Origin: Macrostomum lignano
Taxonomy: Eukaryota
Length of the DNA stretch: 64,000 nucleotides
Direction of reading: 5' to 3'
NCBI GenBank assembly: GCA_002269645.1
Contig: NIVC01001024.1
Coordinates: 248,001-312,000 of the forward strand
Below the pieces are notes generated by a model. That model made no database searches and was not told the DNA's origin. It saw only the letters and a program-made list of their open reading frames with translations. The position numbers and the translations under genes are program-made. Below are positions 1 through 40,467 of the stretch, one piece after another (within the stretch, counting starts at the first letter, position 1; each line of letters starts with the position of its first letter).

Positions 1-2525
1 TGCCATTGTCGCCCTGCGAGGCCAGTTGACGCCCGGGTTTTTGAACGAGCATCAGGGATTGGCGGCTAAGGTGAGTCGATCTGATCCTGCTCATAGTTTT
101 AATGTCACAGCACTCTTTTTTTATTAGAGGCAGGGGGTTGTGTGCACCCTGGCGCACTTTAAGCGACATTGTCTCACAACCGGCGAGAGGCGTTACTGCG
201 CCCATTCCGCCGACTCCCCTGAGTAGGCAGTGTAGGCACACAAGCGCGCGGATACGTACGCAGGCACACACTCACACAGGAGTGTACAGCGGCCCTAACT
301 TTATTTTATCGTTAGGCATGTACACTTCACTGCGCCTTGGGGGGTTGGCTCTCAAGGCCGTTAATTGCACGAGCAGAGCCAAGCCGAGATTCAAATTCAG
401 CCCCAAATTAATGTGACTGCACTTGGAATCGAGCCTGGGCCGCTGGCACACCAGAGCCTGCGCTAGACCGCTGGGCTACGGCCCCTCTTGTCACAGCACT
501 CTACAAACTTTATAAAAGTCAATCTATCTGAAATTACAAGTCGTTTTCGTAAGCTTTCCCGGAGACGTCAATGACAGATTTGTACTTTTACATTACACCA
601 ACTTTCAGCCGGTGTAATGTAAAAGTACATATCTGCCATCGACGTTTAGCGTTGTTCAGCATTTGTATCGTTGACCTATTCGTATCTGCAGTCATCTGTG
701 TCGCTGTTTCCAAGAGTTTCTTTCTTTAAATTGGAATTCAATTAATTTAATGATGCATCCAATTCATCCTGCTTTTGAAAATTCTAATAATAGAGATGAC
801 TTTAAATATGACGTCGAAATCTAAACTTTACTGAATCTAAGATACATGCTTATTTGTACAGTGGAACGGTGCATTTGGGGTCAGTCAGAGTTGATAGTAA
901 CCGCATGGACAGATAGACCGAAGCGCACATTGCCAAGAAATGCTAATGCGTACACATGCGCACGCACTGTACAATGTCAAGAAACGTAAAACGTAGACGA
1001 ATGTTAAAACAGCTGGCGAGCACAGAGGTCGATACGAGGTCAATTCTAATGGATTCAATTAACTTCTGAGCGCTCGCACAAAAGAAAGCCGACAGATTTG
1101 GCGTTCCGAGTAAAAGGATGTTCAGGTGAATTCATTATACCTTAAAAGGCTTCTTGAATTATGCAGAGGCACTATCGGAACATACGTAGCTTACTTGAAG
1201 AGTGAAGCGAGCTACTATGGATATAATTTGATTTTTCGCACTGCTAACCAATCTCGTCAATTCCAGACTTTCAACTCTCAACTTTAATTAAAGTGCAATC
1301 AGAGATGCAGTCTCAAAAAGTTATGGTCCCCTGCACAAAACAATTCCTTCTGTAGTTGCGCTCGTAGAAACTCAGCGACACAGAGTGGATCTACGCAACA
1401 TTTCCACCGTTTCCGCAGGTAAACGAAGCGGCCGACGACACGTTCCAGATGCTCCGTCAAGAATTCGGCAGGAGCTTCCACGGCGGCGACCCCATCCACA
1501 ATACCTCTCTACTGCAGCAGCTCGAAAAGTTCGACCGATTCCTGTCGAAGTTCGAGCTGGCCTGGATATGCGACGGCACAAACCCGGATATTGTGGAGGC
1601 CCTGCTAGACATTCAAGCACTAAGTGAACTTTTTCTCCGAGCAGCGAGCTGGGCAGTGGAACAAAACTGCATAAACCCAGAAGATTTTGCGACATGCGAA
1701 CCGGAAATCATGACGACACTTCCTAGGCTGGCTGTCCTGCTGTACATCAGCGAGTCGACGGTTGATCAAGGATCCGGCAAGGTTCGAAAAGTCTTCCGCG
1801 AGCACCGGGAAGGCCTGGATGAAGCCAGGAAACTTCTGCACCGGCTGGAGCCGCACAAACGCAAAGAGGTGGCTCAACGGCTCTGCCTTAAGACTGACGC
1901 AAGCGATCCGGAAACCAACCGCTTATTCAGAGCCATAGCCAGCGCAGCCGACCAGCTGCAGACCAACCACCCGATCGAGTGCACGTACCTCATGTCCTAC
2001 GTGTGCTCAAAGTACAGCTCTGAGCCTCAAGCCGAGGGTGAGCAGGCTGCAGTGGCGGCCTCTTGCTTTAGCATCGAGCCGTCGGTGCTGTTGCCAGACT
2101 CCGCCTCTATTTCGTGCACTAGTGCGAACTGCGGAGTGGAATTCAGCCTGCTGCAGCACCGGCACCACTGCAGGTCCTGCGGTGACTCATTCTGCAGCCA
2201 CTGCACTACGCATAAGATGCCGCTACCGCTGCTGGGACACCACAGCCCCGTCCGGGTGTGCGAGCCGTGTCGCGACAAAGTGCTGGCCGCGATGCTGACT
2301 AAAGAGGCCCCCGAATGGGTCCCCGACTGTAGCTCGCCCCGTTGCTCGAACGGCGGCTGCAGGGTTGAGTTTACGCTGCTAAGACGACGGCACCACTGCA
2401 GAGCCTGCGGCGGTCTGTTCTGCCACAGCTGCTCCAGCTGGTCGGCCTCGCTGCCGCAGTTTGGCTACAACGAGGCCGTGAGGCTGTGCCAGTACTGCCA
2501 CTCCGTCCACGGCAATCTGCACTGA
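1..2525 (+). CDS. ZFYVE28: Lst2/ZFYVE28-like protein with two FYVE domains (copy 1; 5' end lies before the window). Exons: <1-70 and 1419-2525
   Basis: The exon fragment AIVALRGQLTPGFLNEHQGLAAK ends at AAG|GTGAGT (70/71). Acceptor TTTCCGCAG| at 1418 joins it in phase 0 to VNEAADDTFQMLRQ. Exon 2 matches recalled Lst2 blocks (FDxFxxxFEL, EPxxMxTxPRLA, RLFxxIxxxADQLQTN) and ends in two FYVE fingers (RHHCRxCG, RVC/RLC). The paralogous exon at 14488 supplies the Lst2 N-terminus. Confidence 0.85.
116..488 (-). mobile_element. tRNA-derived SINE family A, full length, in Lst2 intron 1
   Basis: On the minus strand: A-box TAGCCCAGCGG, B-box-like GGCTCGATTCC and an A-rich tail. A 13-bp TSD TGTCACAGCACTC lies at 103-115 and 489-501. 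The insert is absent from the paralogous intron near 14935. Confidence 0.9.
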
Positions 2526-2754
2526 GATTGCAGCTCTTTTCAATTCAGCCTAAAATGGTGCCTCAGCCTAAAATGGTGCCTAACTATTTGGCCAGCTGAG
2601 ATACGTCAAGCTGAACTCGTATTGCTATATGCAGAATCAAAATAAAACAATAAAGATGTACTTGTAATGTGTGTAAACAAAACGTTGGATTAAAGTTGCA
2701 TAGCCAAGGGCAGGTTTGGTGCCTCTCACTGGAGTTTTTGATACTCCTTTGAGG

Positions 2755-3112
2755 TAGCTTTGAACCCGTTAGAGGTAGCTTTGAACCTCTAAAGTAGCTT
2801 TGAACTCCTTTGAAGTACATGTAGCTTTGAACCCCTTTAAAGTAGCTTCGAACCCATTTGGGGTAGCTTTGGATCCCTTTGAAGTAGCTTTGAACCGCTT
2901 TGAACCCCTTTGAGGTAGCTCTGAACCCCTTTGATGTAGCTTTGAACCCGTTTGAGGTAGCTTTGAACCCATTTGAGGTAGCTTTGAACCCCTTTGAGGT
3001 AGCTTTTAACCCCTTTAAGGTAGCTTTGAACCCCTTTGAGGAAGCTCTGAACCCCTTTGATTTAGCTTTAAACCTCTTTAAAAATTTTGAAGTAGCTTTG
3101 AACCCCTTTAAA
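2755..3112. repeat. 21-bp minisatellite (CTTTGAACCCCTTTGAGGTAG)
   Basis: Tandem units are directly visible and explain the NPFEVAL pseudo-ORF. A shorter paralogous array lies at ~16245-16380. Confidence 0.9.
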
Positions 3113-3925
3113 GCAAGCCATGAACACGTGTGAACTTTTTAAAAGGAGTTTTGGCACCTCCAAAAATGAGCTGGCAACCCAAAACATGACAAGCAGTCAC
3201 TCCAAGAAAGATCCAGACTACGTTACTAATAAGCTGCTCCTGGTTATTAAAGTAAAGTAGAGTAAAAGTATTATCTAGCGGATCTATTCGCATCGTTTTA
3301 TGAACAAATTAATTACGCTTTTTATTTGTGAACAGATCAACAACAAAGACACAATAAACCACAGTTAAGCTATGAGTGTAAATGCACTAATAAAGCATCA
3401 CAAATGATGATTTCCCTTTAAGGCTATTTTTCTTTCAATGATATGCTCGAATTGCGTGTTGACAACCCATTTGCCTAGAATTAAAGACAGAAATCATGAC
3501 AGCCATAATTTAACATGCAAATGCGAATTAATAGCGTCGATAGACTCATCGACTCATCTTCGCAAATTAAAGAGATGCACGAACTGCGTTTATGACAGGG
3601 CTGCAAGATAGACAGAACTACAGCTGCAGTCTACTTGATTTATAAGCAGGTGCAAAGCATCCATGTAGAGCATTTGGGATGATTATATCTTTGAAATTCA
3701 TAGATGCCTAAGAAAACTAGTTCGCATTAGAACAGTAGTTTTAAAGTCATGTAGAGGTAGAAGGGGAAGTTTGAACTTGCATGAAGCTTTCAGAAATTTA
3801 CTCAGCAACATTTTAAAAAAGTCGCCAGCCTTCATCCAAGTGACCAGTGTCTTTTGACCATGCAGTGTCTATCAGCTGGTCAATCATTTTAATTTAGCTT
3901 TATGCAGCACATTTGGGCCTGCGCG

Positions 3926-4312
3926 AAGGGGGCCGTAGCCCAGCGGTCTAGCGCAGGCTCTGGTGTGCCAGCGACCCAGGCTCGATTCCAAGTGCAGTCA
4001 CATTAATTTGGGCCTGAATTGGAATCTCGGCTTGGCTCTGCTCGTGCAATTAACGGCCTTGAGAGCCAACCCCCCCCCCCCCCCCCCCCCAAGGCGCAGT
4101 AAAGTGTACATGCCTAACGATAATATAAAGTTAATAATAGGGCCGCTGTACACTCCTGTGTGAGTGTGTGCCTGCGTACGTATCCGCGCGCTTTTGTGTG
4201 CCTGCTCAGGGGAGTCGGCGGAATGGGCAGTAATGCCTCTCGCCGGCTGTGTGCCTATGTCGCTTAAAGTGCGCCAGGGTGCACACAACCCCCCTGCCTC
4301 TAATAAAAAAAA
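3926..4312 (+). mobile_element. tRNA-derived SINE family A, full length
   Basis: Nearly identical to 116-488 in the opposite orientation, ending TAATAAAAAAAA. A 12-bp TSD TGGGCCTGCGCG lies at 3914-3925 and 4313-4324. Confidence 0.9.
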
Positions 4313-4345
4313 TGGGCCTGCGCGCATTGAATTTAATCCAAGGTA

Positions 4346-4922
4346 CGTTTGCCAATGTAATGAAGCTTTTGTCTATGGTACCAAGGCTCTTGCCTTCTCG
4401 CAACCCACTTCGTGGGTTGTTGCGTACCGCTGGAATGTCAGCGTCTCTATCAACAATTTTCAGTCGCTTTTCCAGAGCTCTGCTGATAGTCCAAATCTGA
4501 TAACCTACTGGAACAGTTCCTTCAACTTCTGCTGCATTTTCTGCAACGTCAACAAAGGATTCGTCGCAAGTTGGACCTGAGGCTCTCGAGCACCTTGCCT
4601 TGGCGATTGCCACCCCTTCGCAGGAAATCTCTGCCGGCAGTGATTTTAACGCGCTGATGGATGCTGTAAACCATATTTTCTTTTACATTCAGCAACCTTG
4701 CAATGTCCTTTGGGTGTTCACCTCTGTCCAGTGCTTCGATCACAAGCCAAACGGCATTCGTTCGACTGCCTAGCATATGGTCCACAATTCTGGGGCTGAT
4801 CTTGCTCCTCCGCAGCAGTTGCAAATGAAGCTATGGACCAAATTGGTGCTTGTTGGATCAAATGAAATGCCGCTGTGCCAGCCTTGCTACCATAGACAAA
4901 AGCTCCGTTACTTTCGCAAACG
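4346..4922 (-). mobile_element. Non-autonomous Tc1/mariner (IS630-like) deletion derivative retaining the transposase N-terminal HTH
   Basis: ~43-bp imperfect TIRs (CGTTTGCSAAWGTAAYGRAGCTTTTGTCTATGGTASCAAGGCT) flanked by TA on both sides. The minus strand reads VIEALDRGEHPKDIARLLNVKENMVYSIHQR...RGGNR, then after a frameshift TISRALEKRL...PAVRNNP. Confidence 0.75.
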
Positions 4923-5443
4923 TATCTTAGATTAAAATTAAATTAAATGCGGATGAGAGCATGAGGAGAGCTTTTCAGGTCAGGTGATATAAAGGTCAAT
5001 AGCGCACACAGGAGGAAGGGGTGTGTCCGGTTGGGTTGGGAACTGATCCAGTTTTCAGTTCAAGGCCGAACAGTAAGAAATACTGTAAGACTATAGATTT
5101 CAAGCTGTGCTCAGGTCAATAGCAAGATGAGAAGGATCCGAGCAAACTGCAAGAAACTGGTTAATTTCCCAATTATTCAATTGGTCTAATTTCTGCAGAG
5201 CTTCTAAAGCCGCAGAGCAGCCTCGCTAAATCGATATTGAAGGAGCTTCTGAGAGCTGCCTAATCCACCTGGGTCCCGCTGCTCAAGAGGCCAGAGTATT
5301 AAATAGAAAAGTACAAATGGTTTCATTAGTAGCTTCCATTAGTTTTCAAATTTGTACGTCTGTAACAGGAAAACATGCCTACATGTGCTTTTATTTTTTA
5401 TCGATTTTAAAAGTTCAGAGTTTCGTGACTAACAGATGAACAA

Positions 5444-8150
5444 TCAGAATAGAACTCCTACATGTTCGTGTCTAAACAGGTGAATTACCTAAATAGAACT
5501 ACTAAATGATCGTGTCTAACAGGTGAATAACCTAAATAGAACTACTAAATGATCGTGTCTAACAGGTGAATTACCTAAATAGAACTCCTACATGTTCGTG
5601 TCTAAACAGGTGAATAACCTAAATAGAACTACTAAATGATCGTGTCTAACAGGTGAATAACCTAAATAGAACTACTAAATGATCGTGTCTAACAGGTGAA
5701 TAACCTAAATAGAACTACTAAATGATCGTGTCTAACAGGTGAATAACCTAAATAGAACTACTAAATGTTCGTGTCTAAACAGGTGAATAACCTAAATAGA
5801 ACTCCTAAATGATCGTGACTAACAGGTGAATAACCAAAATAGAACTCCTAAATGATCGTGTCTAACAGGTGAATAACCTAAATAGAACTACTAAATGATC
5901 GTGTCTAACAGGTGAATAACCTAAATAGAACTACTAAATGATCGTGTCTAACAGGTGAATAACCTAAATAGAACTACTAAATGATCGTGTCTAACAGGTG
6001 AATAACCTAAATAGAACTACTAAATGTTCGTGTCTAAACAGGTGAATAACCTAAATAGAACTACTAAATGTTCGTGTCTAACAGGTGAATTACCTAAATA
6101 GAACTACTAAATGATCGTGTCTAACAGGGTGAATTACCTAAATAGAACTCCTAAATGTTCGTGTCTAACAGGTAAATAACCTAAATAGAACTCCTAAATG
6201 ATCGTGTCTAACAGGTGAATAACCTAAATAGAACTCCTAAATGATCGTGTCTAACAGGTGAATAACCTAAATAGAACTACTAAATGTTCGTGTCTAAACA
6301 GGTGAATAACCTAAATAGAACTACTAAATGTTCGTGTCTAACAGGTGAATTACCTAAATAGAACTACTAAATGATCGTGTCTAACAGGGTGAATTACCTA
6401 AATAGAACTACTAAATGATCGTGTCTAACAGGTGAATAACCTAAATAGAACTCCTAAATGATCGTGTCTAACAGGTGAATAACCTAAATAGAACTCCTAA
6501 ATGTTCGTGTCTAAACAGGTGAATAACCAAAATAGAACTCCTAAATGATCGTGTCTAACAGGTGAATAACCAAAATAGAACTCCTAAATGATCGTGTCTA
6601 ACAGGTGAATAACCTAAATAGAACTACTAAATGATCGTGTCTAACAGGTGAATTACCTAAATAGAACTACTAAATGATCGTGTCTAACAGGTGAATAACC
6701 TAAATAGAACTACTAAATGATCGTGTCTAACAGGTGAATAACCTAAATAGAACTACTAAATGTTCGTGTCTAAACAGGTGAATAACCTAAATAGAACTAC
6801 TAAATGATCGTGTCTAACAGGTGAATAACCTAAATAGAACTACTAAATGATCGTGTCTAACAGGTGAATAACCAAAATAGAACTCCTAAATGATCGTGTC
6901 TAACAGGTGAATAACCTAAATAGAACTACTAAATGATCGTGTCTAACAGGTGAATTACCTAAATAGAACTACTAAATGATCGTGTCTAACAGGTGAATAA
7001 CCTAAATAGAACTACTAAATGATCGTGTCTAACAGGTGAATAACCTAAATAGAACTACTAAATGTTCGTGTCTAACAGGTGAATAACCTAAATAGAACTA
7101 CTAAATGATCGTGTCTAACAGGTGAATAACCTAAATAGAACTACTAAATGATCGTGTCTAACAGGTGAATAACCTAAATAGAACTCCTAAATGTTCGTGT
7201 CTAACAGGTAAATTACCTAAATAGAACTACTAAATGATCGTGTCTAACAGGTAAATTACCTAAATAGAACTCCTAAATGATCGTGTCTAACAGGTAAATT
7301 ACCTAAATAGAACTCCTAAATGATCGTGTCTAACAGGTAAATTACCTAAATAGAACTCCTAAATGATCGTGTCTAACAGGTAAATTACCTAAATAGAACT
7401 CCTAAATGATCGTGTCTAACAGGTGAATTACCTAAATAGAACTCCTAAATGATCGTGTCTAACAGGTGAATTACCTAAATAGAACTCCTAAATGATCGTG
7501 TCTAACAGGTGAATAACCTAAATAGAACTACTAAATGATCGTGTCTAACAGGTGAATTACCTAAATAGAACTCCTAAATGATCGTGTCTAACAGGTAAAT
7601 TACCTAAATAGAACTCCTAAATGTTCGTGTCTAACAGGTAAATTACCTAAATAGAACTCCTAAATGATCGTGTCTAACAGGTGAATTACCTAAATAGAAC
7701 TCCTAAATGATCGTGTCTAACAGGTGAATTACCTAAATAGAACTCCTAAATGATCGTGTCTAACAGGTGAATAACCTAAATAGAACTACTAAATGATCGT
7801 GTCTAACAGGTGAATAACCTAAATAGAACTCCTAAATGTTTGTGTCTAACAGGTAAATTACCTAAATAGAACTACTAAATGATCGTGTCTAACAGGTAAA
7901 TTACCTAAATAGAACTCCTAAATGATCGTGTCTAACAGGTAAATTACCTAAATAGAACTCCTAAATGATCGTGTCTAACAGGTAAATTACCTAAATAGAA
8001 CTACTAAATGATCGTGTCTAACAGGTAAATTACCTAAATAGAACTCCTAAATGATCGTGTCTAACAGGTGAATAACCTAAATAGAACTACTAAATGATCG
8101 TGTCTAACAGGTGAATAACCTAAATAGAACTACTAAATGATCCTCTCTAA
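5444..8150. repeat. 43-bp minisatellite, ~60 copies (AAATAGAACTACTAAATGATCGTGTCTAACAGGTGAATAACCT)
   Basis: The 43-bp period was measured directly (5881 to 5924). Units differ only by a few recurrent variants. Confidence 0.97.
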
Positions 8151-8856
8151 CATATCTTAACTCCGACGAGTCATCGGCCATGCAGAACAAAAAAAGTGGC
8201 TTGAACGAAAAAAATTGCTTTTTCGTTATTAAACTCAGAGCATAGATTAAATTCATATGACCAGTGTGGAGGTTACCATACTATATGAAATATTGTCACT
8301 TTCTAATCTCATTATCTATAATAGGACAGCTGCATAATTAAAAAGAGAAAAAGCCCAGACTAGAGACGAAATCGATAAAACTTTTAAAATAGCTTCATAG
8401 CTTCATTAATAAATTGCCATACTGCCTTTACTTGTACAATTCAAAGCAAAACTTACATAATTTAAGTAAATAAAAATTAAATTAGCCAAACACTAATGAC
8501 AACAGCCAAGCAGACGGACAAGGTTAAGGCGGCACCCGATACAGATAAACAAAAAGAAGAAAACTTACAGACAATAATTACGAGCATTTGAAATTGGTCG
8601 GCTAAAATAACAATTAAAACTACAACAATACAATAAGCTATATTAAGAAGTATTCAGTAAATAATATTGTCCATCACATTAGTTATAATTCAATTAAAAT
8701 ACTATAAATTTATTTTGTTGAAACAAAGTTGACCGCACATAAAATGTAAACAAAATCTAAACTTGAATACAGGCAACTTATATAGAAATGATTATTGGAT
8801 TTGGCAATAGCTTATCGAATCCTTTGATTCATTTAATCTGCATCTGCATCTTATAG

Positions 8857-9415
8857 GATCTGGGAGGCTGGCTCAGCAACTGAGGATCTGGGAGGCTGGC
8901 TCAGCAACTGAGGATCTGGGAGGCTGGCGGCCCAGCTACTGGGGATCTGGGAGGCTGGCCCAGCTACTGGGGATCTGGGAGGCTGGCTCAGCAACTGAGG
9001 ATCTGGGAGGCTGGCGGCCCAGCTACTGGGGATCTGGGAGGCTGGCCCAGCTACTGGGGATCTGGGAGGCTGGCCCAGCTACTGGGGATCTGGGAGGCTG
9101 GCCCAGCTACTGGGGATCTGGGAGGCTGGCCCAGCTCTGAGGATCTGGGAGGCTGGCCCAGCTACTGGGGATCTGGGAGGCTGGCCCAGCTACTGGGGAT
9201 CTGGGAGGCTGGTGGCTCGGCAACTAAGGATCTGGGAGGCTGGTGGCCCAGCAACTGGGAATCTGGGAGACTGGCCCCAGCAACTGAGGATCTGGGAGGC
9301 TAGCCCAGCAACTGGAGGATCTGGGAGGCTGACCCAGCACCTGAGGATCTGGGAGGCTGGCCCAGCACCTGAGGATCTGGGAGGCTGGGGAGGCCCAGCA
9401 ACTATAGGATCTGTG
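8857..9415. repeat. ~28-bp GC-rich minisatellite (GGATCTGGGAGGCTGGCCCAGCAACTGA) just downstream of the ERGIC2 copy 1 stop codon
   Basis: Tandem units are visible. Paralogous arrays lie at 18222-18915 and 20983-21570. Confidence 0.92.
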
Positions 9416-9455
9416 TAGTTAACAAGGCATCACAGAGAACGCAGCAGCGAGGTGC

Positions 9456-9956
9456 TCAAGACAAAGGTGACGCATATCTGATGCCAGCATCCGTCACCAC
9501 AGGCAGGTGGCTGGATCCCCTACCGGCCATGGCGCGGCACAGGCGGTCCCAGGCGGCATTCACCAGGTAGCAGAGCAGAGCTGAGCAGGCGAACACTCCC
9601 CCAGTGATGGCCGCCAGGTTAGTGAGGAAGCTGCTAAGCGGCAGGCCGGCGTCCTTGACAACCACCTGCAGCGGGCTGACTTCGTATTTGAAAAACAGGC
9701 CGGGCAATCCGTGGCTGCCCCTGCCGTGGTCGATGACTCTGTCCAGCTCCTGCACCGCGTACTGGAAGCTGCGAACTGTGGCGCCAGCCGCTGCGGACAG
9801 GCCGCGGCGGTGCAGCTCGGTGGGGACCACCTGCGGGTGGTTGGGAACGGCTGCTGCATCAGAAGTGGTGTACTTTGGCCTAGCAGAGAGGCTGTCCAAG
9901 TGCTTGTCTCTGTGATTGTCGCAGTGTCCGTCTGTTTGTCTGTCTGCCTGTCTGCA

Positions 9957-10001
<45 letters not shown>

Positions 10002-10054
10002 TAGTGTCTCTCTGTCTGGCTGTCTGTCTGTCTGTCTGTCTGTCTGGCTGTCTA

Positions 10055-10093
<39 letters not shown>

Positions 10094-10140
10094 GGCTGTC
10101 TATCTGTCTGTCTGTCTGTCTTAGTGTCTCTCTGTCTGGC

Positions 10141-10177
<37 letters not shown>

Positions 10178-12272
10178 GCCTGCCTGCACGTCTGTCTGCC
10201 TGCCTGTCTGTCTATCTATCTGAGTGTCCAGGCCCATGAACTAAAAGTCTCCATCTTAAATTCCACCCAAGTGCTGATCTTAACTGATAATATTAAGCGC
10301 CGACACGGGACCATAAAAAGCCAAACCCATAGTTAGCATAATAACCGGATTCCCCCAAATCGGCTCACCTGCACAAAGTACTGATAATTAGTGCTGGCAT
10401 GCTGGGTGACTTTCTCTTCGTAATCCAATGGATTAATGCGACCGGGCACATCCTCGCCGAAGCTCAGATGGTAGATTCGATGGGAGAAGTTCAACGCCGT
10501 GGCGTGACTGGCCTGTTAGAAACAGGGGGAGGGGGGATGACCCTCACTTCATGGAAATTGAACTTGCAGCGTCAGAAGCCTTGAAATAATTTTCGAATTG
10601 CTTGGTTTGCCCGTGGCAATGTAATTTCCTTTTAAAAGCCAAACTAGTCTAGACTAGTACGAGCTATCTTAATCATGATTGTATTAGAATGTGCTTTGCT
10701 AATTAAACTGAATTTCTCTTCAGGGATTTCGCAGCTTCCTAGATCTCCCAGAGAGGAAATGAAATTTAATTTGACAATCAATCAGCAAATGTAAAAAGAA
10801 GTTTAATCAAGTCTTTTTTCTACAGTGACTCACTACTACAAAGAAGGCTATTGAGTTTGACACCTAAATAGGAATCTTCTGCCCAGCTTGATCTATCAGA
10901 AATAATCAATATTGATACTCGTGCAAACCACAGAATCGCATGGCATGACAAAGATCTAAGATATTTATTTTAAACCTCAAATCATGCATCAGAACCCCAT
11001 AGCAACTGGGGATATTGATCTTAGTTTATCCCAGTTTATCCCCCAACAACAACTAGAAGTAAAAATTTCGTGTACTTATGAGTATTGCTTGAAAAGCGAC
11101 AGTATTGGCCCAGCAGGCTAAATAGAACACTCATCGATCCCCCAATACCTGGAAGTGGGCATGCGTGGCGCCAAAATTGACAGGCTTGCCGCCAGTCAGG
11201 TGCAAATTTCCTGCCACCTTGTTCACCCGGAAGCGGCCACGAAGCCGACAGGCTGAGGCGGCCTTCCGCTCGTTGGGACTCTGGAAGTGCTCGGAGCCAA
11301 GTACGTTCAGCCAGCCTACTACTACTACCACTTGTACTTTACTACTTATACTACTACTTGTAAAAGTAGTCTCAATAGCGAGCTAAGGAATCTAGCTAAC
11401 TTCCTGGGTCAATATTTCCCAGGGTCAATAAAAGATCAATATCCTTTAAACTAAGGGATCAATATTCCTGTAATCTAAGGGATTAATATCCTTGTAATCT
11501 ATGGGATTAATATCCCTGTAATCTAGGGGATCAATATCTATCTAATCAATGGGATCAATATCCTTTAACCTCAGGGATCAATATCCCTTTAATTTAAGGG
11601 ATCAATATCCCTGTAAACTAAGGGATTAATATCTCTGTAATCTAAGGGATTAATACCCCTGTAATCTATGGGATCAACATCCCTGTAATCTATGGGTTTA
11701 TATCCATTTACTCTATGGGATAAATATCCCTAAGCTACCGAATCTAGATAGCACCTGGAGCCATAGCGTCAAGGTAAAATCACCCCTACCTGCATATGCT
11801 GCCGAGTAGAGAATCGATTCCTTGATGACTCATCCAACTCAAAATCGGTAGGAATCTCTTCCAACTCAGAGGTACCATGCGTCTCAGTGCCAGTAATATC
11901 CAGCACATCCATGCCTATAGAGACGCAAGGCGAGGCAACCACCAAGTCAACATTGATGAGCATCTCTGCACTATGGTCAGGATCCACTCCGTAAGCAAAC
12001 TGCACTCTCCGCTCCATGTAATTATTAACTTCAACGCACACTAACAGAAACATGAGCAGGAATGTAACCAGGGTGATGCCAGCAGCCGAGGCGGTTCCAG
12101 AACTTCTACAATCTTCAGGAAGTTTAGTGAACACATCCAACTTGCGAACTGCTTTGACCATTTCCTCTGATACTGGCGATTTCGCAGCTGATTCGGGCGC
12201 ACTTGGCACATTTCGGTGCCTGAGTTCGGTGTCAGACTGAGCTGAATGACTGTTTATGCTAATGTTGCTCAT
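9456..12272 (-). pseudogene. ERGIC2: ERGIC2 (Erv41-like) copy 1 with damaged exon 2. Exons: 12272-11790, residual 11316-11149, 10512-10369, 9830-9456
   Basis: Same protein as copy 2, but the acceptor and first 54 nt of exon 2 are deleted and replaced by (CTA)n-type filler at 11317-11350. The other exons have intact GT-AG sites and reading frames. Skipping exon 2 would stay in frame, so pseudogene status is not certain. Confidence 0.75.
9928..10225. repeat. (TCTG)n microsatellite in ERGIC2 copy 1 intron 3
   Basis: Directly visible. The paralogous array is at 22088-22245. Confidence 0.95.
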
Positions 12273-19300: not shown

Positions 19301-21723
19301 GGATCCGTTTGCAACTTTTTATCAGTAAATTAATTACCCTTTTATTTGTTAACTGATCGACAACAAAAAGCCACAATAAGCTACGAGTTTAAATGCACTA
19401 ATAATTAAGCATCACAATTATGGATTTCCTTTTAAGGCTTTTTTTCTTTCAATAATATGCTTGAATTGCCTGTTGACTACCTAATTGCCTACAATTAAAG
19501 GCAGAAATTACAGACAATCATAATTGAACATGCAAATTTGCATTAATAGCATTGATGGAGTCATCTTCTGTAAATTAAAGACGCAGGTGGAACGCATATC
19601 CATCTAGAGCATTTGGGGGTAATTATGCCTTGAAATTCAAGACTCAAGTCACTTTTACAACAGCTTCGAATGGCACTAATCAATTGAAAAGTACGTCTTA
19701 TAAATTTCTCAATCCAGAGTTTTGACCATAGCAAACAATAAACCGGCCTGTAAAACCAAAGATTCCTTATGAGAACAGGACCTACTCAAAGCGCCATGTA
19801 GGGGTAAAGAAAGTGAAGTTCACTTTTCTGTTTAAGTGTGGTTCGAACTATAATAGTGCTTTCCGTGATAAATTTAAACAGGGTCGCTTTCAATACGAAT
19901 ACACAGTTTAAATACTCAGTTTGAGAAGGATATTTCAACTCCCCCCGTTTCGTCGAAAAATTCACTAGCTTTTTGTATTTACTTACTTTCGTTATACTAA
20001 TCAGATTTTGCCGAGCAAATAACATAACATAAAAGACAGGAATTTCATGTCAGGTGATATAGAGGTCAATACGCTCGTAGGGCAAACAGGCTGTCAGACC
20101 AGCTCAAAAGCGATGATTTATGACCCGAAAGTAGCAAAAACCGCGCCTATGTAATTATAACTACAAGTATGGAAAAATCAGGAGAAAAATGCCCATAGCC
20201 TGCTGTTAGTAGGCTAGTAAGTTTGAAGCGCGTGTGCGAGCGTGAAATTTGGAAAACAGTGCGTCCTCATCACTTCTTTCAAATAAACTTTACGTGGCTC
20301 AACTCGGCACAACTCTTAAATATTCGTGTCTAACAGGTGAGCAATATCTAACTAAATAGAACTCTTAGAACTCTAAATATTCCTGTCTACCAGGCTAAAT
20401 TCACTATTATCTTTATAAGTTCATAGTATAGATTAAATTCATATGACCTGCGTGGGAGTGACCAGAATACGTGACAAACCTATAAAGCAACTGCATGATT
20501 AAAAAGAGGAAAAGTTCAGACCAAAAAAGAGCTGATCAAAATTTCCCTTATCATTGCTTTATCGTTTCATAAATTGCCATACTGCCTATATTTGTACATT
20601 TCAAAGCAAACATACATAATTTTATTGTAGTGAATGAAAAATTAAATTAGCCAGCCACTACACGACATAAAATTGAAACAAATTGAACAGGGACAAAAAT
20701 TACGAGTATTAGAAATTTATAGCCCGTTAAAATAACAATTAAAAATACAACAATAGAAGAGGCTACATTATATTCAGAAGTCTTCAGTAGATAGTAATGT
20801 CCATCAAATAGGCTATAATTCAACTAAAATATTATAAATAATGTTGAAGGTATGTTGACGGCACATAAAATGTAAAGGAATTCAGAATTTGAAGACAGGA
20901 AATTTATATAGAATTGACTCTTGTGTTTGACAATAGCTTATCGAATTATTTGACTCACTTAATCTGCATTTTGTGGGATTTAAGAGGCTGGCCCAGCAAC
21001 TGAGGATCTTGGAGGCTGGTGGCTCGGCAACTGAGGATATGGGAGGCTGGCGGCCCAGCTACTGAGGATCTGGGAGGCTGGCCCAGCTACTGAGGATCTG
21101 GGAGACTGGCCCAGCAAATGAGGATTTTTGAGACTGGCCCAGCAACTGATGATCTGGGAGGCTGGCCCAGCTACTGGGGATCTGGGAGGCTGGCCCAGCT
21201 ACTGGGGATCTGGGAGGCTGGCCCAGCTACTGGGGATCTGGGAGGCTGCCCCAGCTACTGGGGATCTGGGAGGCTGGTGGCTCGGCAACTGAGGATCTGG
21301 GAGGCTGGTGGCCCAGCAACTGGGAATCTGGGAGGCTGGCCCAGCAGCTCGGGATCTGGGAGGCTGGTGGCCCAGCAACTGAGGATCTGGGAGGCTGGCC
21401 TAAACAACTGAGGATCTGGGAGGCTGGTGGCCCAGCAACTGAGGATCTGGGAGGCTAGCCCAGCAACTGAGGATCTGGGAGGCTGGCCCAGCAACTGAGA
21501 ATTTCGGAGGCTGGTGGCCCAACAACTGAGGATCTGGGAAGGCTGGGGAGGCTCAGCAACTGTGAGGATCTAGGTAGTTAACAAGGCATCACAGAGAACG
21601 CAGTCAGCGAGGTGCTCAAGACAAAGGTGACGCATACCTGATGCCAGCATCTTTCACCACAGGCAGGTGGCTGGAGCCCCTACCCGCCATAGAGCGGCAC
21701 AGCCGGTCCCAGGCGGCATTCAC
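16313..21723. repeat. Near-identical tandem duplication of ~2.75 kb (16313-19066 and 19075-21723)
   Basis: The unique sequence repeats almost base for base, with only a few substitutions seen. The junction has an 8-nt insert AGGCGGCA at 19067-19074. Confidence 0.92.
18956..19066 (-). pseudogene. ERGIC2: Orphan 3' fragment of the ERGIC2 last exon (third partial copy)
   Basis: Encodes the last ~36 codons (VNAAWDRLCRSMAGRGSSHLPVVKDAGIRYASPLS*) with no acceptor. Confidence 0.85.
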
Positions 21724-22136
21724 CAGGTAGCAGAGCAGAGCTGAGCAGGCGAACACTCCCCCAGTGATGGCGGCCAGGTTAGTCAGGAAGCTGCTAAGCG
21801 GCAGGCCGGCGTCCTTGACAACCACCTGCAGCGGGCTGACTTCGTATTTGAAAAACAGGCCGGGCAATCCGTGGCTGCCCCTGCCGTGGTCGATGACTCT
21901 GTCCAGCTCCTGCACCGCGTACTGGAAGCTGCGAACTGTGGCGCCAGCCGCTGCGGACAGGCCGCGGCGGTGCAGCTCGGTGGGGACCACCTGCGGGCGG
22001 TTGGGAACGGCTGCTGCATCAGAAGTGGTGTACTTTGGCCTAGCAGAGAGGCTGTCCAAGTGCTTGTCTCTGTGATTGTCGCAGTGTCCGTCTGTTTGTC
22101 TGTCTGTCTGTCTTAGTGTCTGTCTGACTGTCTTAG

Positions 22137-22189
<53 letters not shown>

Positions 22190-25100
22190 GCATGTCTGTC
22201 TGTCTGTCTGCCTGCCTGCCTGTCTCTCTGTCTGTCTGTCTGAGTGTCTAAGGCCAGTTAGGATAAGTCTCCATCTTAAAATCCATCCAAGTTTCAACTG
22301 ACAATCCCAAGCGCCGACACGGGACCATAAAAAGCCAAACCCATAGTTAGCATAATCAAGGACGACTTAAGTAGAAGGACGGGAAACCTCGTTTCTTAGA
22401 AAAGTTTTGAAGGCACTTTTTCCCGAAAAAATACACTACGGAGATAGGAAGTTTTCATTTTTTCAGCACAAAAATTGTTATTGCGTTTGATAGGAGGCAG
22501 ATCCAGTGTTCATCTTTTGATATGTTGTGCCTTTTTTATTGCTCTATCGATATTTATAAAGCTTTTCGTTCAGAAAATTGGGATTCTATGTTAATTTTTT
22601 ATTCTACGTATATTTCCTGTATCTAAAAATCACAAAAATGCATGACACAGCTCCAATATTAGGTTTTATGAACCTATTTTATCATCTCTGTTACAAATAT
22701 TTGCTACACAGTCGGGTAAGAATGATAAAATAGACTCATGAAGCTAAAGAGCCGAGCCGTGGCATTCTAATGTATTTCAAGCACAAGACACGCGAAAATA
22801 TACGTAGAATAAAAAATTAACATAGAATCCTAATTTTCTGAACGAAAAGCTTTATAAATATCGATAGAGCAAAAAAAGGCACAACATATCAAAAGATGAA
22901 CACTGGATCTGCCTCCTATCAAACGCAATAACAATTTTTGAGCTGAAAAAATGAAAACTTTCTATCTCCGTAGTGTATTTTTTCGGGAAAAAGTGCCTTC
23001 AAAACTTTTCTAAGAAACGAGGTTTCCCGTCCTTCTACTTAAGTCGTCCTTGAGCATAATATCCGGATTCCCCCAAATCGGCTCACCTGCACAAAGTACT
23101 GATAATTAGTGCTGGCATGCTGGGTGACTTTCTCTTCGTAATCCAATGGATTAATGCGACCGGGCACATCCTCGCCGAAGCTCAGATGGTAGATGCGATG
23201 GGAGAAGTTCAACGCCGTGGCGTGACTGGCCTGTTAGAAACAGGGGGGGGGGGGGATGACCCTCACTTCATGGAAATTGAACTTGCAGCGTCAGAAGCCT
23301 TGAAATAATTTTCGAATGGCTTGGTTTGCCCGTGGCAATGAAATTTCCTTTTAAAAGCAAAAGTAGTCTAGACTAGTACCTCAATCATAATTATATTAAA
23401 ATGTGCTTTGCTAATTAAACCGAATTTCTCTTCAGGGATTTCGCAGCTTCCTAGATCCCCCAGAGAGGAAATGAAATTTAATTTGACAATCAATCAGCAA
23501 ATGTAAAAAGAAGTTTAATCAATTCTTTTTTTTCTACAGCGACTTACTACTACAAAGAAGGCTATTGAGTTTGACACCTAAATAGGAATCTTCTGTCCAG
23601 CTTGATCTATCAGAAATAATCAATATTGATACTCGTGCAAACCACAGAATCGCATGGCATGACAAAGATCTATAATATTTATTTTAAACCTCAAATCATG
23701 CATCAGAACCCCATAGCAACTGGGGATATTGATCCCAGCTATGCATCCATAAATTGAAGCTCCCAACCCCATAGAAACTGGGGATATTGATCCCAGATAA
23801 GCATCCATAAATTGAAGCTCCCAACCCCATAGAAACTGGCGGATATTGATCCCAGATAAGCATCCATAAATTGAAGCTCCCAACCCCATAGAAACTGGGG
23901 ATATTGATCCCAGATAAGCATCCATAAATTGAAGCTCCCAACCCCATAGAAACTGGGGATATTGATCCCAGATAAGCATCCATAAATTGAAGCTCCCAAC
24001 CCCATAGCAACTGGGGATATTGATCCCAGATATGCATCGATTTCAAGATCACAACCCCATAGCAACTGGGGATATTGATCCCAGATATGCATCGATTTCA
24101 AGATCACAACCCCATAGCAACTGGGGATATTGATCCCAGATATGCATCGATTTCAAGATCACAACCCCATAGCAACTGGGGATATTGATCCCAGATATGC
24201 ATCGATTTCAAGATCACAACCCCATAGCAACTGGGGATATTGATCCCAGATATGCATCGATTTCAAGATCACAACCCCATAGCAACAATGAGCTGTTAAT
24301 CCCCAGCTAAGCCTCACAACAAATAGAAGTACAAATTTCGTGTACTTATGAGTATCGCTTGAAAACACGACAGTATTGGCCCAGTAGGCTAAACAGAACA
24401 CTCATCGATCCCCCCAATACCTGGAAGTGGGCATGCGTGCCGCCAAAATTGACGGGCTTGCCGCCAGTCAGGTGCAAATTTCCTGCCACCTTGTTCACCC
24501 GGAAGCGGCCACGAAGCCGACAGGCTGAGGCGGCCTTCCGCTCGTTGGGACTCTGGAATTGCTCGGAGCCGAGTACGTTCAGCCAGCCTTTGTCGGCGAA
24601 TAAGTCGCTCTGCAGCGCGTGATGATGCTGCCTGATGGCCTCCTGGGGGTTATTGACGGTTGGAGTGGGAGATTCGTAACAGCTACTACTTGTATAAGTA
24701 GTCTCAATAGCAAGGGATAAGGAATCTAGCTAACTTCATGGGTTCAATATTCCTTTTATCTGTGGGATCAATATCCTTTAACATAAGGGATCAATATCCC
24801 TGTAATCTAAGGGATTAATACCCTGTAATCTATGGGATTAACATCCCTGTAATCTATGGGATCAATATCCCTGTAATCTGTGGGATCAATATCCTTTAAC
24901 CTAAGGGATCAAAATTTTTAATTTAAGGGATCAATATCCCTGTAATCTATGGGATTAATATCCCTGTAATCTATGGGATTAATATCCCTGTAATCTATGG
25001 GATCAATATCCCTGTAATCTATGGGATCAATATCCGTTTAATCTATGGGATCAATATCCATTTAATCTATGTTATCAATATCTATCTAATCTATGGGATC

Positions 25101-26140
25101 AATATCCCTTTAATCCTTGGGATCAATATCCTTTAATCTATGGGATCAATATCCTTTAATCTATGGGATCAGTATCCCTTTAATCTATGGGATCAATATC
25201 CCTTCAATATATGGGACCTATATGCCTTGAATCTATGGGATAAGTATCCCTTTAATCTATGGCATCAATATCCATTTAATCTATGGGATCAATATCCATT
25301 TAATCTATGTTATCAATATCTATCTAATCTATGGGATCAATATCCCTTTAATCCTTGGGATCAAATTTATCCTTTAATCTATGGGATCAATATCCTTTAA
25401 TCTATGGGATCAGTATCCCTTTAATCTATGGGATCAATATCCTTTAATCTATGGGATCAGTATCCCTTTAATCTATGGGATCAATATCCCTTCAATATAT
25501 GGGACCTATATCCCTTTAATCTATGGCATCAATATCCATTTAATCTATGGGATCAATATCCCTTTAATCTATGAGATCAATATTGATAACTGCCTGAAAT
25601 CAATATCCCTAAGTTACTGGATGTGGATAGCACCTGAATGTAAATTCACCCACCTACCTGCATATGCTGCCGAATAGAGAATCGATTCCTTGATGACTCA
25701 TCCAACTCAAAATCGGTAGGAATCTCTTCCAACTCAGAGGTACCATGTGTCTCAGTTCCCGTAATATCTAACACATCCATGCCTATAGAGACGCAAGGCG
25801 AGGCAACCACCAAGTCAACATTGATGAGCATCTCTGCGCTATGGTCAGGATCCACTCCGTAAGCAAACTGCACTCTCCGCTCCATGTAATTATTAACTTC
25901 AACGCACACTAGAAGAAACATGAGCAGGAATGTAACCAGGGTGATGCCAGCACCCGAGGCGGTGCCAGAACTTCGACAATCCTCAGGAAGTTTAGTGAAC
26001 ACATCCAACTTGCGAACTGCTTTGACCATTTCCTCTGATACCGGCGATTTTGCAGCTGATTCGGGCGCACTCGGCACATTTCGGTGCCTGAGTTCGGTGT
26101 CAGACTGAGCTGAATGACTGTTTATGCTAATGTTGCTCAT
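21616..26140 (-). CDS. ERGIC2: ERGIC2 (Erv41-like) copy 2, intact, ~407 aa. Exons: 26140-25658, 24642-24421, 23230-23087, 21990-21616
   Basis: Four exons joined by phase-0 GT-AG introns give one ORF with the Erv41/46 family motifs LDVFTKLP plus TM1, CRLRGRFRVNKVAGNLH, NFSHRIYHLSFG, YQYFVQVVPT and GSHGLPGLFFKYEVSPL plus TM2. The GSHG motif and N-terminus favour ERGIC2 over ERGIC3. Confidence 0.9.
22357..23052. mobile_element. Foldback / long-TIR non-autonomous hAT element (696 bp) in ERGIC2 copy 2 intron 3
   Basis: Inverted arms of ~258 bp (22357-22615 and ~22796-23052) start with CAAGGACGAC. An 8-bp TSD AGCATAAT lies at 22349-22356 and 23053-23060. The empty site is present in copy 1 (~10335). 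Confidence 0.9.
23708..24283. repeat. 55/58-bp minisatellite in ERGIC2 copy 2 intron 2
   Basis: Two subtypes in blocks (58-bp units, then 55-bp units) share the core CCCCATAGMAACTGGGGATATTGATCCCAGAT. A single monomer exists in copy 1 at ~10995-11020. Confidence 0.92.
24760..25600. repeat. ~22-24-bp minisatellite (TAATCTATGGGATCAATATCCCT) in ERGIC2 copy 2 intron 1
   Basis: Tandem units are visible. A shorter paralogous array is at ~11410-11730. Confidence 0.9.
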
Positions 26141-29100
26141 TACTACTTGATTAGCTGGTAGCAGTAGTAAGTTAGGCTGTTTTTTGCTGAAAATGAAATT
26201 TCAATTATTTGTATTACTTTCTGTAGCCAGGTTTGACTATGCAGTATGAAGGAGTCGTGTGTGGCGACCCCCAGTCCTTGGACTAAACTGCCATATGCAG
26301 CCTTCAGATGCGCCATGCAATTGCTGCAGTTGAGCTATCAGTTTGCATATCTACATATTATGGCAGGTGTATTTAATTATGATTGTATGCCTAAAATGTA
26401 GACATTCAAAACAAATGCATTAGAGCTGTATGCCTTTAGCCAAAAATTTGGCCTGAAAAAATTCAGCATACTGTATACTATATCCAATATGTGTTACATA
26501 TTGGTGTAGACTTGGAATAGGAAGTCTATTTGGCCATAGTCTGGTGGTATGGCATGGCACTTTTATGTGCCAGCAATCATAGGTTCTATTTCAGAAGTAG
26601 ATTTAAAACCATCCCTAATCTTTTATTTATGTCTAACACTAACCTCTAGATGAGATGCTATAATTATTAGTCAAAGCCTCTATATAAGTTTGTTGCTTTC
26701 TATAGTTTTATCATTGGCACCTATAGATACTATATAGTATTTCTTCTTCTACATAAAAATGTCTTTAGTCTAAAATTACTATTGGTTTTAAGTCTTCATC
26801 CAACTCTTACTAATATATATTATATGCCTAGACCTATTGTCATTGAATTAAGGTAGTGCCAATCATACCCAATTGTTTTTCTTAAAATTACGTCATACAA
26901 AAGCTTAAATAAATGTAAATTACTCATATTTTTTCAATCATTTGTATTACTAATAACTAAGCCAATGTTCTATATGAATCACTGCATTTTAAGCCTAAGC
27001 CAATTCTAATTAGCCTTTTTAATCAACTTTTGTTTGAATTGGACCACAAATAGGGCTATCAATATTTTTATATGAACTAAAACAAAGGTGATAAGCAAAT
27101 AAAGCATTGAATATATAAATTATTGCTCAGATAAACAAAACAAAGTTGGAAAGGATTAGGATTTACCAGAAAAAACAACTTTGCTTAGGGCTAGGCAAGA
27201 AAGCTTACTCTTAAATAAAATGTAAAAATATAATAAAGCCTATCATTGGGCATCTTTCATCCTTAATAATGCTAGTCTATCTAGAGTTATTTGTCAATCA
27301 TAGGGCAAAAAACAACCAAGTTCTTATTTCAAAGAAAGCTCTGAGACTTATCTGTACTATAGCATTAAATGACCACCCAGCTACAATTACAACTACCCTC
27401 CGCTAGAATTCGAGGACCTATTTGACTATGACTATTTGAAACTGAAATTATTAAGTTGATGATATACACTTTGTCATTGAGTATTCATATTCATAATTAA
27501 ACTACCTTACCTACTAGAATTTAACTTGAATAGGCTTCACATTTTTTAAAGCAGGATTTCTTTTGCATTTTCATCTGCAGAATATGAGGCCATTATAATC
27601 AAAACATATTTAGTTTGCTGGTGCTGGTAGCAATTTTTTTTAAGTTTTAGACTTTGAGACTTTTAATGAAGACTAATCAAGAGAAACCTACATCTTTTGA
27701 ATCAAACTTCTCTATCCTTGAATAATACATATAACATAAGTACTTTGTTATAGAGATATAGAAGGTCAAACCTAAGATTAAGGAAACCTTAATCTCTACC
27801 AGGTTTGAGGATAAATGTATAAAATTATTAATTTAGCAATATGTAATATTAATAAATTGTGTCCTGCCATAAGGAGGGTCCATGTACTGTAGCCATAGCT
27901 ATAAGCTCCAATTCTCTATATTTTATAGCCATAAGGATTTCAATATTACCATATTCTTGTAGTTCCTATAGCCGTAGCCATAGTTTTAACAAAAAGTCTA
28001 GAAAACAAAATATTTTGAATCAAGAAGATAACCTAGTGCTGAAACAACTGCAAATTAAGTTAGAAAATAAAAGAAACACTCAATTGCCTTTGTAAGACTA
28101 TATTTTTTTCAGAGCAATAATAATAATTCATCAGAAAATGATTGGTGACACTCTTAAGAGAATGCTTGTCAATATAAAGCGCCAATAGAGGATCAAGACA
28201 AAGGGAGGAGTTTCAAAAGAAGAGGACAAACAGGACATCATCAACTGGCAGGACGAGCATGCTGACACTAACATCAATGCTAATGCTACTAGCCACAGCA
28301 ACGCCTTTGAGAAAAAGTGACTCTATTCATTTTTTGCATTTAGTTGGTTCAATTGGTTTATACTTAGTTTTTTGTTTCAGTTGCCTATAGGCCCCTACTA
28401 GGCCTAGCTTAATGGTTTTTTGGTTGGTAAAGTTGGCGAAACCAAATAAACCAAGATAGAAAGCAACATTATTATTATTAATGTGCAAGGTGCCTCCCGA
28501 TTTCTTTATAAAATAGTCACCATTTAGTCAATTTGAATTCACGCCAAAACTAAGAAACATATTTTGTTTTACTTGTAATTTTCATAATATTTTATACAAA
28601 CTAATTTTTGTTTCAACTAGCAGTAAATTTTAGTACAAATAAAAGCATTTTTGGCGGAGGAGAGACCAACCTCGCGCATTGCGGTTCCACAATAAGTGAT
28701 TGATAGTGAATAGCAAGAGTTCCAAGAAAATAAGAATTGAAGAAGTGTTTTCTGTGTTAATTCCTTTTACAAGGTAGGAGTGAAATAGACTGAAGTGTAT
28801 ATAGTGCATACTATTGAGAAGTAGCAATATTGAGTACTAAGAGAATACAAAGTAGATCTAAAGTGATATGTGTAAGAATAACTCGAGGCTGTGACCCTCT
28901 GATCTCGGTAATGCCCAAGGACTTGCAAAGTACATGAAATATATATACCAGTAAGCCAAAATACTGCTTAGGCCAAATTATTAAACAGAACACTACCAGA
29001 ATAACAGAGGAGTAAAATCTTTCAGGGCTAATAGTTTTCTAAGAATAATACTCAGACTAAATACTCAGACCTATTCTAATAAATATTGTCAGACTTATTC

Positions 29101-34026: not shown

Positions 34027-37784
<3,758 letters not shown>

Positions 37785-40429: not shown

Positions 40430-40463
<34 letters not shown>

Positions 40464-40467
40464 CATG

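Follow-up and report, generated by a model that had tools for sequence, protein, structure and literature searches.

Complementary gene loss after whole-genome duplication is known in yeasts and teleosts, and the complementary (reciprocal) loss of duplicated genes was reportedly treated as divergent resolution by Lynch and Force in 2000. In tandem arrays, hybrid genes produced by unequal crossover are known from the alpha-globin -3.7 deletion and the red/green opsin genes, and collapse of the human RCCX module (C4A/C4B-CYP21A1P/CYP21A2-TNXA/TNXB) often gives a defective chimeric CYP21 gene. Here, we analysed a locus of Macrostomum lignano in which a convergent pair of genes, one encoding a Lst2-like protein with two FYVE fingers and the other ERGIC2, is found twice in tandem, with a different gene damaged in each repeat. 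The locus lies in a stretch of 64,000 nucleotides (nt) of eukaryotic, repeat-rich DNA (NIVC01001024.1:248001-312000, assembly Mlig_3_7, GCA_002269645.1), hereafter the window, to which all coordinates without a prefix refer.

M. lignano DV1 is a neopolyploid with ~85% of its genome in three paralogous copies, the subgenomes S, L1, and L2, which show ~2.2% divergence in single nucleotide polymorphisms (SNPs; ~98% identical) plus many large indels (Zadesenets et al. 2023, PMC10733133). Our preferred reading of the locus, to which we give a probability of about 0.72 on the basis of sequence comparison, is that of an old tandem duplication carried by one of the three subgenome copies, whose units would have decayed in a complementary manner, and of which a single-unit recombinant would be found on a sister contig. 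The damage observed would be the ordinary decay of redundant copies. The sequences compared with the window were L001, a piece of the same contig fetched around the FYVE gene (L001 10309-22833 is identical to window 1-12525, 100% identity), L002 (NIVC01002864.1), and L003 and L004, two loci on NIVC01001547.1; the loci on these other two contigs were reached via Lst2-like paralogues and their kynureninase neighbours.

Self-comparison of the window revealed two collinear direct units of ~13 kb each, both containing a convergent pair of the Lst2-like gene (plus strand) and ERGIC2 (minus strand), in agreement with an earlier sequence-only reading of this DNA, which had proposed a tandem duplication of the pair; its further proposal of complementary lesions in the two repeats held on this contig when the units were aligned. 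Identity between the units ranges from 73 to 90% in non-coding DNA and is about 97% in the ERGIC2 exons, and large indels have further separated them since the duplication. The units, the spacer between them, and the collinear matches (unit 1 / unit 2) are listed below, all of them from self-comparison except the last one, obtained by comparison with the fetched contig.

About -596 (upstream of the window) to 12820, direct: unit 1
12821-14198, no strand: unique spacer between the units, 1.38 kb
14199-26483, direct: unit 2
5-100 / 14825-14925, direct: collinear match
590-1313 / 14998-16102, direct: collinear match
2649-3550 / 16144-16803, direct: collinear match
8327-10093 / 20488-22249, direct: collinear match
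10335-11020 / 23053-23734, direct: collinear match, a 690-bp block, 95.8% identical, around ERGIC2 exon 3
10988-12386 / 24268-26256, direct: collinear match
12603-12820 / 26268-26483, direct: collinear match
L001 9712-10308 / 14199-14810, direct: collinear match upstream of the window

No match to the 1.38-kb spacer was found among the other sequences fetched for the analysis, and a TRW motif in it had suggested a fragment of a hAT transposase, a guess that was dropped, as Pfam gives no support to it.

The ERGIC2 genes are encoded on the minus strand in four exons, with all introns in phase 0. Their exons, and the lesion found in copy 1, are located as follows (a slash marks a splice boundary).

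26140-25658, minus strand: copy 2 exon 1, GT-AG splice sites
24642-24421, minus strand: copy 2 exon 2, complete, 74 codons, acceptor ccccag/GAG, GT-AG
23230-23087, minus strand: copy 2 exon 3, GT-AG
21990-21616, minus strand: copy 2 exon 4, GT-AG
12272-11790, minus strand: copy 1 exon 1, 161 codons, ATG at 12272
11350-11317, minus strand: copy-1 lesion, a 34-nt GTA-rich filler replacing 94 nt of copy 2 (24682-24589)
11316-11149, minus strand: copy 1 exon 2, surviving 3' part, 56 codons, donor intact
10512-10369, minus strand: copy 1 exon 3, within the 690-bp 95.8% block
9830-9456, minus strand: copy 1 exon 4, stop codon included

Every splice site of copy 2 is GT-AG and its product is 407 amino acids (aa) long, so the complete ERGIC2 gene that had been ascribed to this copy is present. 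Of the 94 nt replaced in copy 1, 40 are the end of intron 1, with the ccccag acceptor, and 54 the beginning of exon 2; the loss of the exon-2 acceptor, already noticed in the sequence-only reading, is thus real and extends to 18 codons. In alignments of the family, the 18 missing residues, EAIRQHHHALQSDLFADK, correspond to a segment of moderate conservation. In addition, copy-1 exon 1 carries G63A, one of its two amino acid differences from copy 2, at a nearly invariant glycine.

The assignment to ERGIC2 is supported by two domains of the copy-2 protein, ERGIC_N (PF13850) at residues 42-130 (E = 1.3e-21, 77 bits, cut-off 27), which exon 1 alone also matches, and COPIIcoated_ERV (PF07970) at residues 188-368 (E = 6.8e-43, 147 bits, cut-off 23.6). 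The best matches aligned end-to-end, covering 82-91% of the query at 37-43% identity, and bear the name ERGIC2 in records from nemerteans, echinoderms, fish, and flatworms (40-43% identity to proteins so named); an ERGIC3 protein appeared with no better than E = 7e-37. Hydrophobic stretches, ITLVTFLLMFLLVCVEV and LAAITGGVFACSALLCYLV, are visible by eye in the sequence and are candidates for the two transmembrane segments that this family has close to its termini, on either side of a luminal domain. Upstream of the ATG, the AG of a tttcattttcag/C site is conserved at a distance of 46 nt in both copies (26186 and 12318), and an annotated 5'-partial coding sequence on NIVC01002864.1 begins exactly at the corresponding point (L002 22182), where the AG is altered (ttgcatg); this site is likely a transcript start or a trans-splice acceptor, which may be of the spliced-leader kind.

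The Lst2-like gene is encoded on the plus strand in two exons, with the following elements in the two copies.

L001 10001-10378, plus strand: copy 1 exon 1, 126 codons, starting 307 nt upstream of the window and ending at window position 70, donor AAG/GTGAGT
1419-2525, plus strand: copy 1 exon 2 (the last one), encoding two FYVE fingers and the remainder of the Lst2 homology region, stop codon 2523-2525
14500-14892, plus strand: copy 2 exon 1 remnant, open frame, GT donor intact, a further in-frame ATG at 14488
16102-16144, plus strand: copy 2 deletion junction, ~40 nt of GCAGTCTAAT-like short-repeat filler in place of the equivalent of copy-1 1314-2650

Copy 1 encodes a complete product of 494 aa (P0121, PAA73200.1, BOX15_Mlig021178g1). 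Its intactness had been claimed from the part visible in the window, with a broken or missing 5' part as the point that could overturn it; exon 1 was found intact upstream of the window. In copy 2, exon 1 shows two in-frame indels relative to copy 1, and the deletion took away the acceptor, the entire exon 2, and the first part of the 3' flank. No FYVE exon was found in copy 2 by tblastn, and the whole of Lst2 exon 2 has been lost from it, as proposed earlier. Judging from the alignment, this lesion removes both FYVE fingers and is clearly disabling.

The name Lst2 itself stands only in part. An N-terminal Lst2 homology region was detected, 21% identical over 294 aa to the Lst2 homologue of the copepod Eurytemora (E = 6e-7), together with an ADQLQTN region. 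However, the single C-terminal FYVE finger of Lst2 / ZFYVE28 is not what the gene encodes, as two FYVE stretches are found at about residues 350-410 and 425-488, and another M. lignano protein, P0123, is far closer to Eurytemora Lst2 (40% identity over 297 aa, E = 1e-65) than P0121 is. The window's protein and P0123 are 32% identical over 422 aa (E = 1e-59). On these comparisons, the gene in the window is a divergent Lst2 paralogue with two FYVE fingers, and the canonical M. lignano Lst2 orthologue is P0123.

Lst2-like genes are annotated on three contigs, g1 on NIVC01001024.1, g2 on NIVC01001547.1, and g3 on NIVC01002864.1. The last one showed an intact 494-aa Lst2-like gene, then ERGIC2, and then kynureninase 6.4 kb further on. 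Its ERGIC2 gene comprises 407 codons plus an annotated 15-codon leader (422-aa product), in four exons, all of them GT-AG and with a complete exon 2. Collinearity of this contig with the window extends from ~47.5 kb to 24103 and is taken up again directly at 11024, leaving without counterpart an inner segment that holds both lesions.

About 11022-24103, no strand: inner ~13.1-kb segment absent from NIVC01002864.1, from contig comparison

In a three-way alignment, ~206 consecutive informative sites of NIVC01002864.1 are of copy-1 type up to 11021, and beyond this point the sequence is mostly of copy-2 type, being 93-99% identical to copy 2 versus 75-96% to copy 1. The switch, at 11021/11022 in copy 1 and 23735/23736 in copy 2, coincides with the right edge of the 690-bp block of 95.8% identity, within ERGIC2 intron 2. 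The single unit of NIVC01002864.1 is thus composed of the left part of copy 1 and the right part of copy 2, and both its genes are intact. Regarding NIVC01001547.1, 10.6 kb are unseen between L003 and L004 and a second unit would require at least 19 kb; on these distances, this contig must lack a second unit because the gap is too small. The Lst2-like gene g2 of this contig (P0213, 446 aa) shows a frameshift between the FYVE fingers that removes the second one (L003 12359-12828), which may stem from genuine decay of a third copy or, instead, from an indel error in the long reads.

The position of the lesions decides what a collapse would do. What remains after an unequal-crossover deletion is unit 1 up to the crossover point and unit 2 beyond it, and as both lesions are inner, one in the 5' half of copy-1 ERGIC2 and the other in copy-2 Lst2, any crossover between them would restore an intact pair of genes. 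All of the longest exact matches shared by the units, of 213, 132, 108, and 104 bp, are located between the two lesions. Given that the lesions are inner and that an intact single-unit form exists in the same genome, the duplication is not locked in, and neither gene depends on it.

Comparison of the coding sequences gave an indication of age. The count of 16 nt differences and two amino acid changes in ERGIC2 exon 1 reported by the sequence-only reading was exact on recounting: 14 of the differences between copy 1 and copy 2 are synonymous and two non-synonymous (ratio of non-synonymous to synonymous divergence, dN/dS, 0.04). Over the 1170 shared coding nt, 25 synonymous and six non-synonymous differences were found, with a synonymous divergence (dS) of 0.095 and a dN/dS (omega) of 0.07. 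The synonymous excess relative to neutrality is highly significant both in exon 1 (binomial P = 8e-8) and in all the shared coding sequence (P = 5e-11), and neutral evolution of one ERGIC2 copy is possible for at most ~14% of the time since the duplication. These values show that purifying selection kept both ERGIC2 copies for nearly the whole time since the duplication, as had been suspected from exon 1. With so low an omega and at most ~14% of neutral time, the copy-1 lesion would be either very recent or not inactivating.

Between the units, exon 1 of the Lst2-like gene showed a dS of 0.28 and a dN/dS of 0.28, and between contigs (g1 versus g3) the dS of the Lst2-like coding sequence is 0.027, about one tenth of the between-unit divergence. 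As the units differ by 10-27% in non-coding DNA and by a dS of 0.10-0.28, much in excess of the ~2% by which the subgenome copies differ, the tandem duplication is far older than the subgenome split, and this divergence shows it to long predate the whole-genome multiplication. A recent duplication followed by fast decay of the inner segment was rejected, since the synonymous and intron divergence of this segment is 5-10 times the subgenome level, which relaxed constraint cannot give. In addition, ERGIC2 has a lower dS than the Lst2-like exon 1, which, together with the 96% identical block around ERGIC2 exon 3, suggests gene conversion between the units.

In the order of events that we propose, the ancestral convergent pair (Lst2-like on the plus strand, ERGIC2 on the minus strand) would have been duplicated in tandem long before the whole-genome multiplication. 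The lesions would have come later, probably once polyploidy had added redundancy: a 1.3-kb deletion would have taken the FYVE exon of copy-2 Lst2, and the 94-to-34-nt replacement would have taken the exon-2 acceptor and 18 codons of copy-1 ERGIC2. Non-allelic homologous recombination between the units would be expected to give a single-unit hybrid such as that carried by at least one other subgenome copy.

Several points weigh against this history. Exon 1 of ERGIC2 on NIVC01002864.1 is a mosaic of copy-1-type and copy-2-type sites with unique changes, so that events must have been more complex than one clean crossover. A tract of 8.5 kb (~2490-11021) is almost identical to L002 12800-20563, with three mismatches outside repeats, and its flanks differ by 1-2.5%; it may represent either recent conversion between subgenomes or an assembly mosaic. 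Chimeric scaffolds, which hold 36% of the Mlig_3_7 assembly length (PMC10733133), leave room for such mosaics. Finally, the polarity, from a duplicated ancestor to its collapse, rests on divergence arguments and not on an outgroup.

Three other explanations of the architecture were considered. The sequence-only reading had taken the reciprocal damage to leave one intact copy of each gene, on different repeats, so that a collapse could cost a gene; in the strong form of this model, the duplication would be locked in and its collapse would delete an essential gene. Within this contig each gene is indeed back to one intact copy, the sole intact Lst2-like gene being in copy 1 and the sole canonical ERGIC2 exon-2 acceptor in copy 2; genome-wide, however, the claim fails, as the assembly contains two further paralogous loci and NIVC01002864.1 carries both an intact Lst2-like gene and an intact ERGIC2. 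The predicted cost of a collapse is contradicted too, since the lesions lie in the inner segment, the best recombination substrates sit between them, and NIVC01002864.1 has the structure of the collapsed form, with both genes intact, which makes this explanation very unlikely. An assembly artefact, in which a chimeric scaffold would have strung diverged paralogous loci together, would fit the many chimeric scaffolds of Mlig_3_7 (PMC10733133) and the finding of the tandem arrangement on only one of the three contigs, the other two being single-unit and without room for a second unit, respectively. However, the units differ 5-10 times more than the subgenomes do, and copy 2 is therefore not a misplaced subgenome copy; the permuted inner order (5' half of ERGIC2, spacer, Lst2 remnant, 3' half of ERGIC2) would need three independent misjoins; and a seemingly separate fused protein model, P0345, maps across the arrangement at 100% identity. 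We therefore regard an artefact as improbable. The single unit could, instead, be ancestral, and the 13.1-kb inner segment an insertion from another genomic site, where an older and diverged paralogous locus would lie, as the single-unit appearance of two of the three contigs and the location of both lesions within the extra segment would allow. Against this, the inner segment is a circular permutation of the unit (right half, spacer, left half), which one exchange from a single-copy donor cannot supply; its ERGIC2 exons have been under long-term purifying selection, and the inner exons 4 and 3 belong to the intact copy-2 gene; and the copy-1-type patches in exon 1 of NIVC01002864.1 suggest an ancestor with both units. 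Such an insertion seems unlikely to us, and we retain the old duplication with a later collapse on a sister subgenome copy.

A different question is whether copy-1 ERGIC2 is a pseudogene, as the loss of an acceptor is no proof of a dead gene. It could be expressed via a cryptic in-frame acceptor, the luminal domain of the product then bearing either an 18-aa substitution or a loss of 30 aa, or else as part of an ERGIC2-ERGIC2 fusion transcript made by read-through. None of the four exons has lost its open frame, the lesion shortens the sequence by a multiple of three (net change -60 nt), in-frame AG sites are found at 11370 and 11280 (ttccag/AGT at 11280), and omega is as low as 0.07, although a very recent lesion explains this equally well. 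Moreover, an 800-aa NCBI model and the 772-aa P0345 read in frame through copy 1. On the other hand, 18 residues are gone from a moderately conserved family segment, G63A affects a nearly invariant glycine, and the candidate acceptor at 11370 follows a poor pyrimidine tract and has a G at -3. In P0345, part of exon 3 is skipped, and copy 2 is joined to copy 1 through an 'exon' (14864-14718) antisense to the Lst2 remnant and via the junction RQHMQ/SPNERK; as it resembles a typical ab initio over-prediction, it was not used as RNA evidence, and the 800-aa model also looks over-predicted. A living copy 1 thus appears doubtful to us.

The deposited annotation presents a single 800-aa gene with the organization ERGIC_N-ERV-ERGIC_N-ERV, which fuses both ERGIC2 copies over 9456-26186 on the minus strand (L001 19764-22833), and contains no gene model for the Lst2 remnant of copy 2. 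By accession order, the fused product should be PAA73201.1. Enumeration of GT/GC-AG splicing solutions for this model gave seven candidates without a 5' leader and 57 with it, so the model is under-determined, and an exact look-up in the protein collection of these seven candidate fusions and the two 407-aa ERGIC2 proteins found none of them. The first ERGIC2 homology search had no M. lignano protein among its matches, and a later representative search gave P0345. If the two copies were co-transcribed and spliced into a tandem ERGIC2-ERGIC2 protein of ~800 aa born from the duplication, the altered start of copy-1 exon 2 would be part of a functional new isoform and not a lesion. Both termini of Erv41-type proteins face the cytosol, and a tandem protein would therefore be topologically feasible; even so, we consider this origin of a new protein improbable.

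Apart from the lesions, the units differ by repeats and by a secondary duplication, which were located by self-comparison and, for the first row, by absence from NIVC01002864.1.

116-485, plus strand: ~370-bp dispersed repeat, gained by copy 1 in Lst2 intron 1
3929-4311 (inverted) and 35753-36281: other copies of the ~370-bp repeat
5423-8152, no strand: 43-bp satellite, 63 copies, 2.7 kb, gained by copy 1 between the convergent 3' ends
16313-19076 / 19075-21734: secondary tandem duplication of 2.76 kb within copy 2, 94% identity

Since it has no counterpart on NIVC01002864.1, the ~370-bp repeat in the Lst2 intron represents an insertion difference between subgenome copies; with the copy at 3929-4311, the one at 116-485 makes up an inverted pair on either side of Lst2 exon 2. 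Only ~90 bp of the 43-bp satellite (two degenerate units) were found in copy 2, at 17550-17640 and 20311-20401, and the array on NIVC01001547.1 reaches at least 7 kb (L003 15731-22688). As a result of the secondary duplication, a third fragment of the ERGIC2 exon-4 tail, its last 41 codons, lies at 19084-18962 on the minus strand. A second short dispersed repeat of ~260 bp is found at 12431-12718, 26257-26386, 41253-41447, and L001 6954-7215, upstream of both ERGIC2 copies. A third unit upstream of the Lst2-like gene, suggested by the 260-bp match there, was rejected, as the recurrence of the element at 41253-41447 identifies it as a dispersed repeat.

The remaining features of the window are the following.

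4549-4824, minus strand: open reading frame (ORF) of 91 aa with weak helix-turn-helix matches (HTH_23, below the cut-off), adjoining the inverted repeat copy
34027-37778, minus strand: kynureninase (P0341), downstream gene, three paralogous copies in the assembly
About 40020-55876, minus strand: myosin-III-like downstream gene, its product (at least 1398 aa) combining a protein-kinase domain with a myosin motor
58689-63640: long terminal repeat (LTR) retroelement with 179-bp terminal repeats, 97.8% identical, and gag-like CCHC, integrase zinc-binding, and integrase core domains

The 91-aa ORF is probably a transposase remnant. Minisatellites and (CTGT)n runs crowd the introns of the kynureninase and myosin-III-like genes and give rise to many spurious long ORFs, and the reading frames of the LTR retroelement are split across several frames.

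For annotation, these results mean that ERGIC2 and the FYVE gene exist in several near-identical copies, with a tandem pair at one locus and damage in some copies, a caution on gene models that concerns users of M. lignano in RNA interference, CRISPR, and expression work. For rediploidization, they offer a base-pair view of how the subgenomes of a neopolyploid can differ by whole repeat units, and of how unequal crossover can purge decayed inner copies. Complementary damage would lock in a tandem duplication only where the lesions fall in the outer halves; inner lesions leave it reversible. The finding is a correction and a worked example, and the current understanding of gene duplication is unchanged by it.

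The locus is thus a fresh, routine instance of a known phenomenon, complementary decay after segmental duplication, and its comparison with described systems can be made at several levels. Its organization fits the three-subgenome description of M. lignano (PMC10733133), as it is found on three contigs with a SNP difference of ~2% and large indels between them (a transposable element insertion, the length of a satellite, and a 13-kb unit); that description, in contrast, gives genome-wide statistics only, and neither this locus nor a difference between subgenomes in the unit number of a tandem duplication is described there. At the protein level, the window's ERGIC2 resembles the ERGIC2 / Erv41 family in having both ERGIC_N and COPIIcoated_ERV, and the FYVE gene shares with the Lst2 / ZFYVE28 family the N-terminal homology region and the ADQLQTN motif region, differing from it in its two FYVE fingers and in being only 21% identical to an arthropod Lst2 over the N-terminal region; the canonical orthologue is P0123 instead.

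The likeness to divergent resolution lies in the decay of redundant duplicates with different members lost from each copy, under purifying selection until redundancy permits the loss. In contrast to that process, the copies are here adjacent tandem units on one chromosome and not homeologous chromosomes, extra subgenome copies make both losses harmless, and the inner lesions are reversible by unequal crossover. With the RCCX module the locus shares a multi-gene tandem segmental duplication with truncated or pseudogenized members in its inner part, and with RCCX and the alpha-globin and opsin arrays it would share the generation of single-unit hybrids by non-allelic homologous recombination, with the junction in a tract of high identity. 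However, unlike RCCX, the units are far more diverged (73-90% identity in non-coding DNA), and in the single-unit hybrid the intact half of each gene has been retained.

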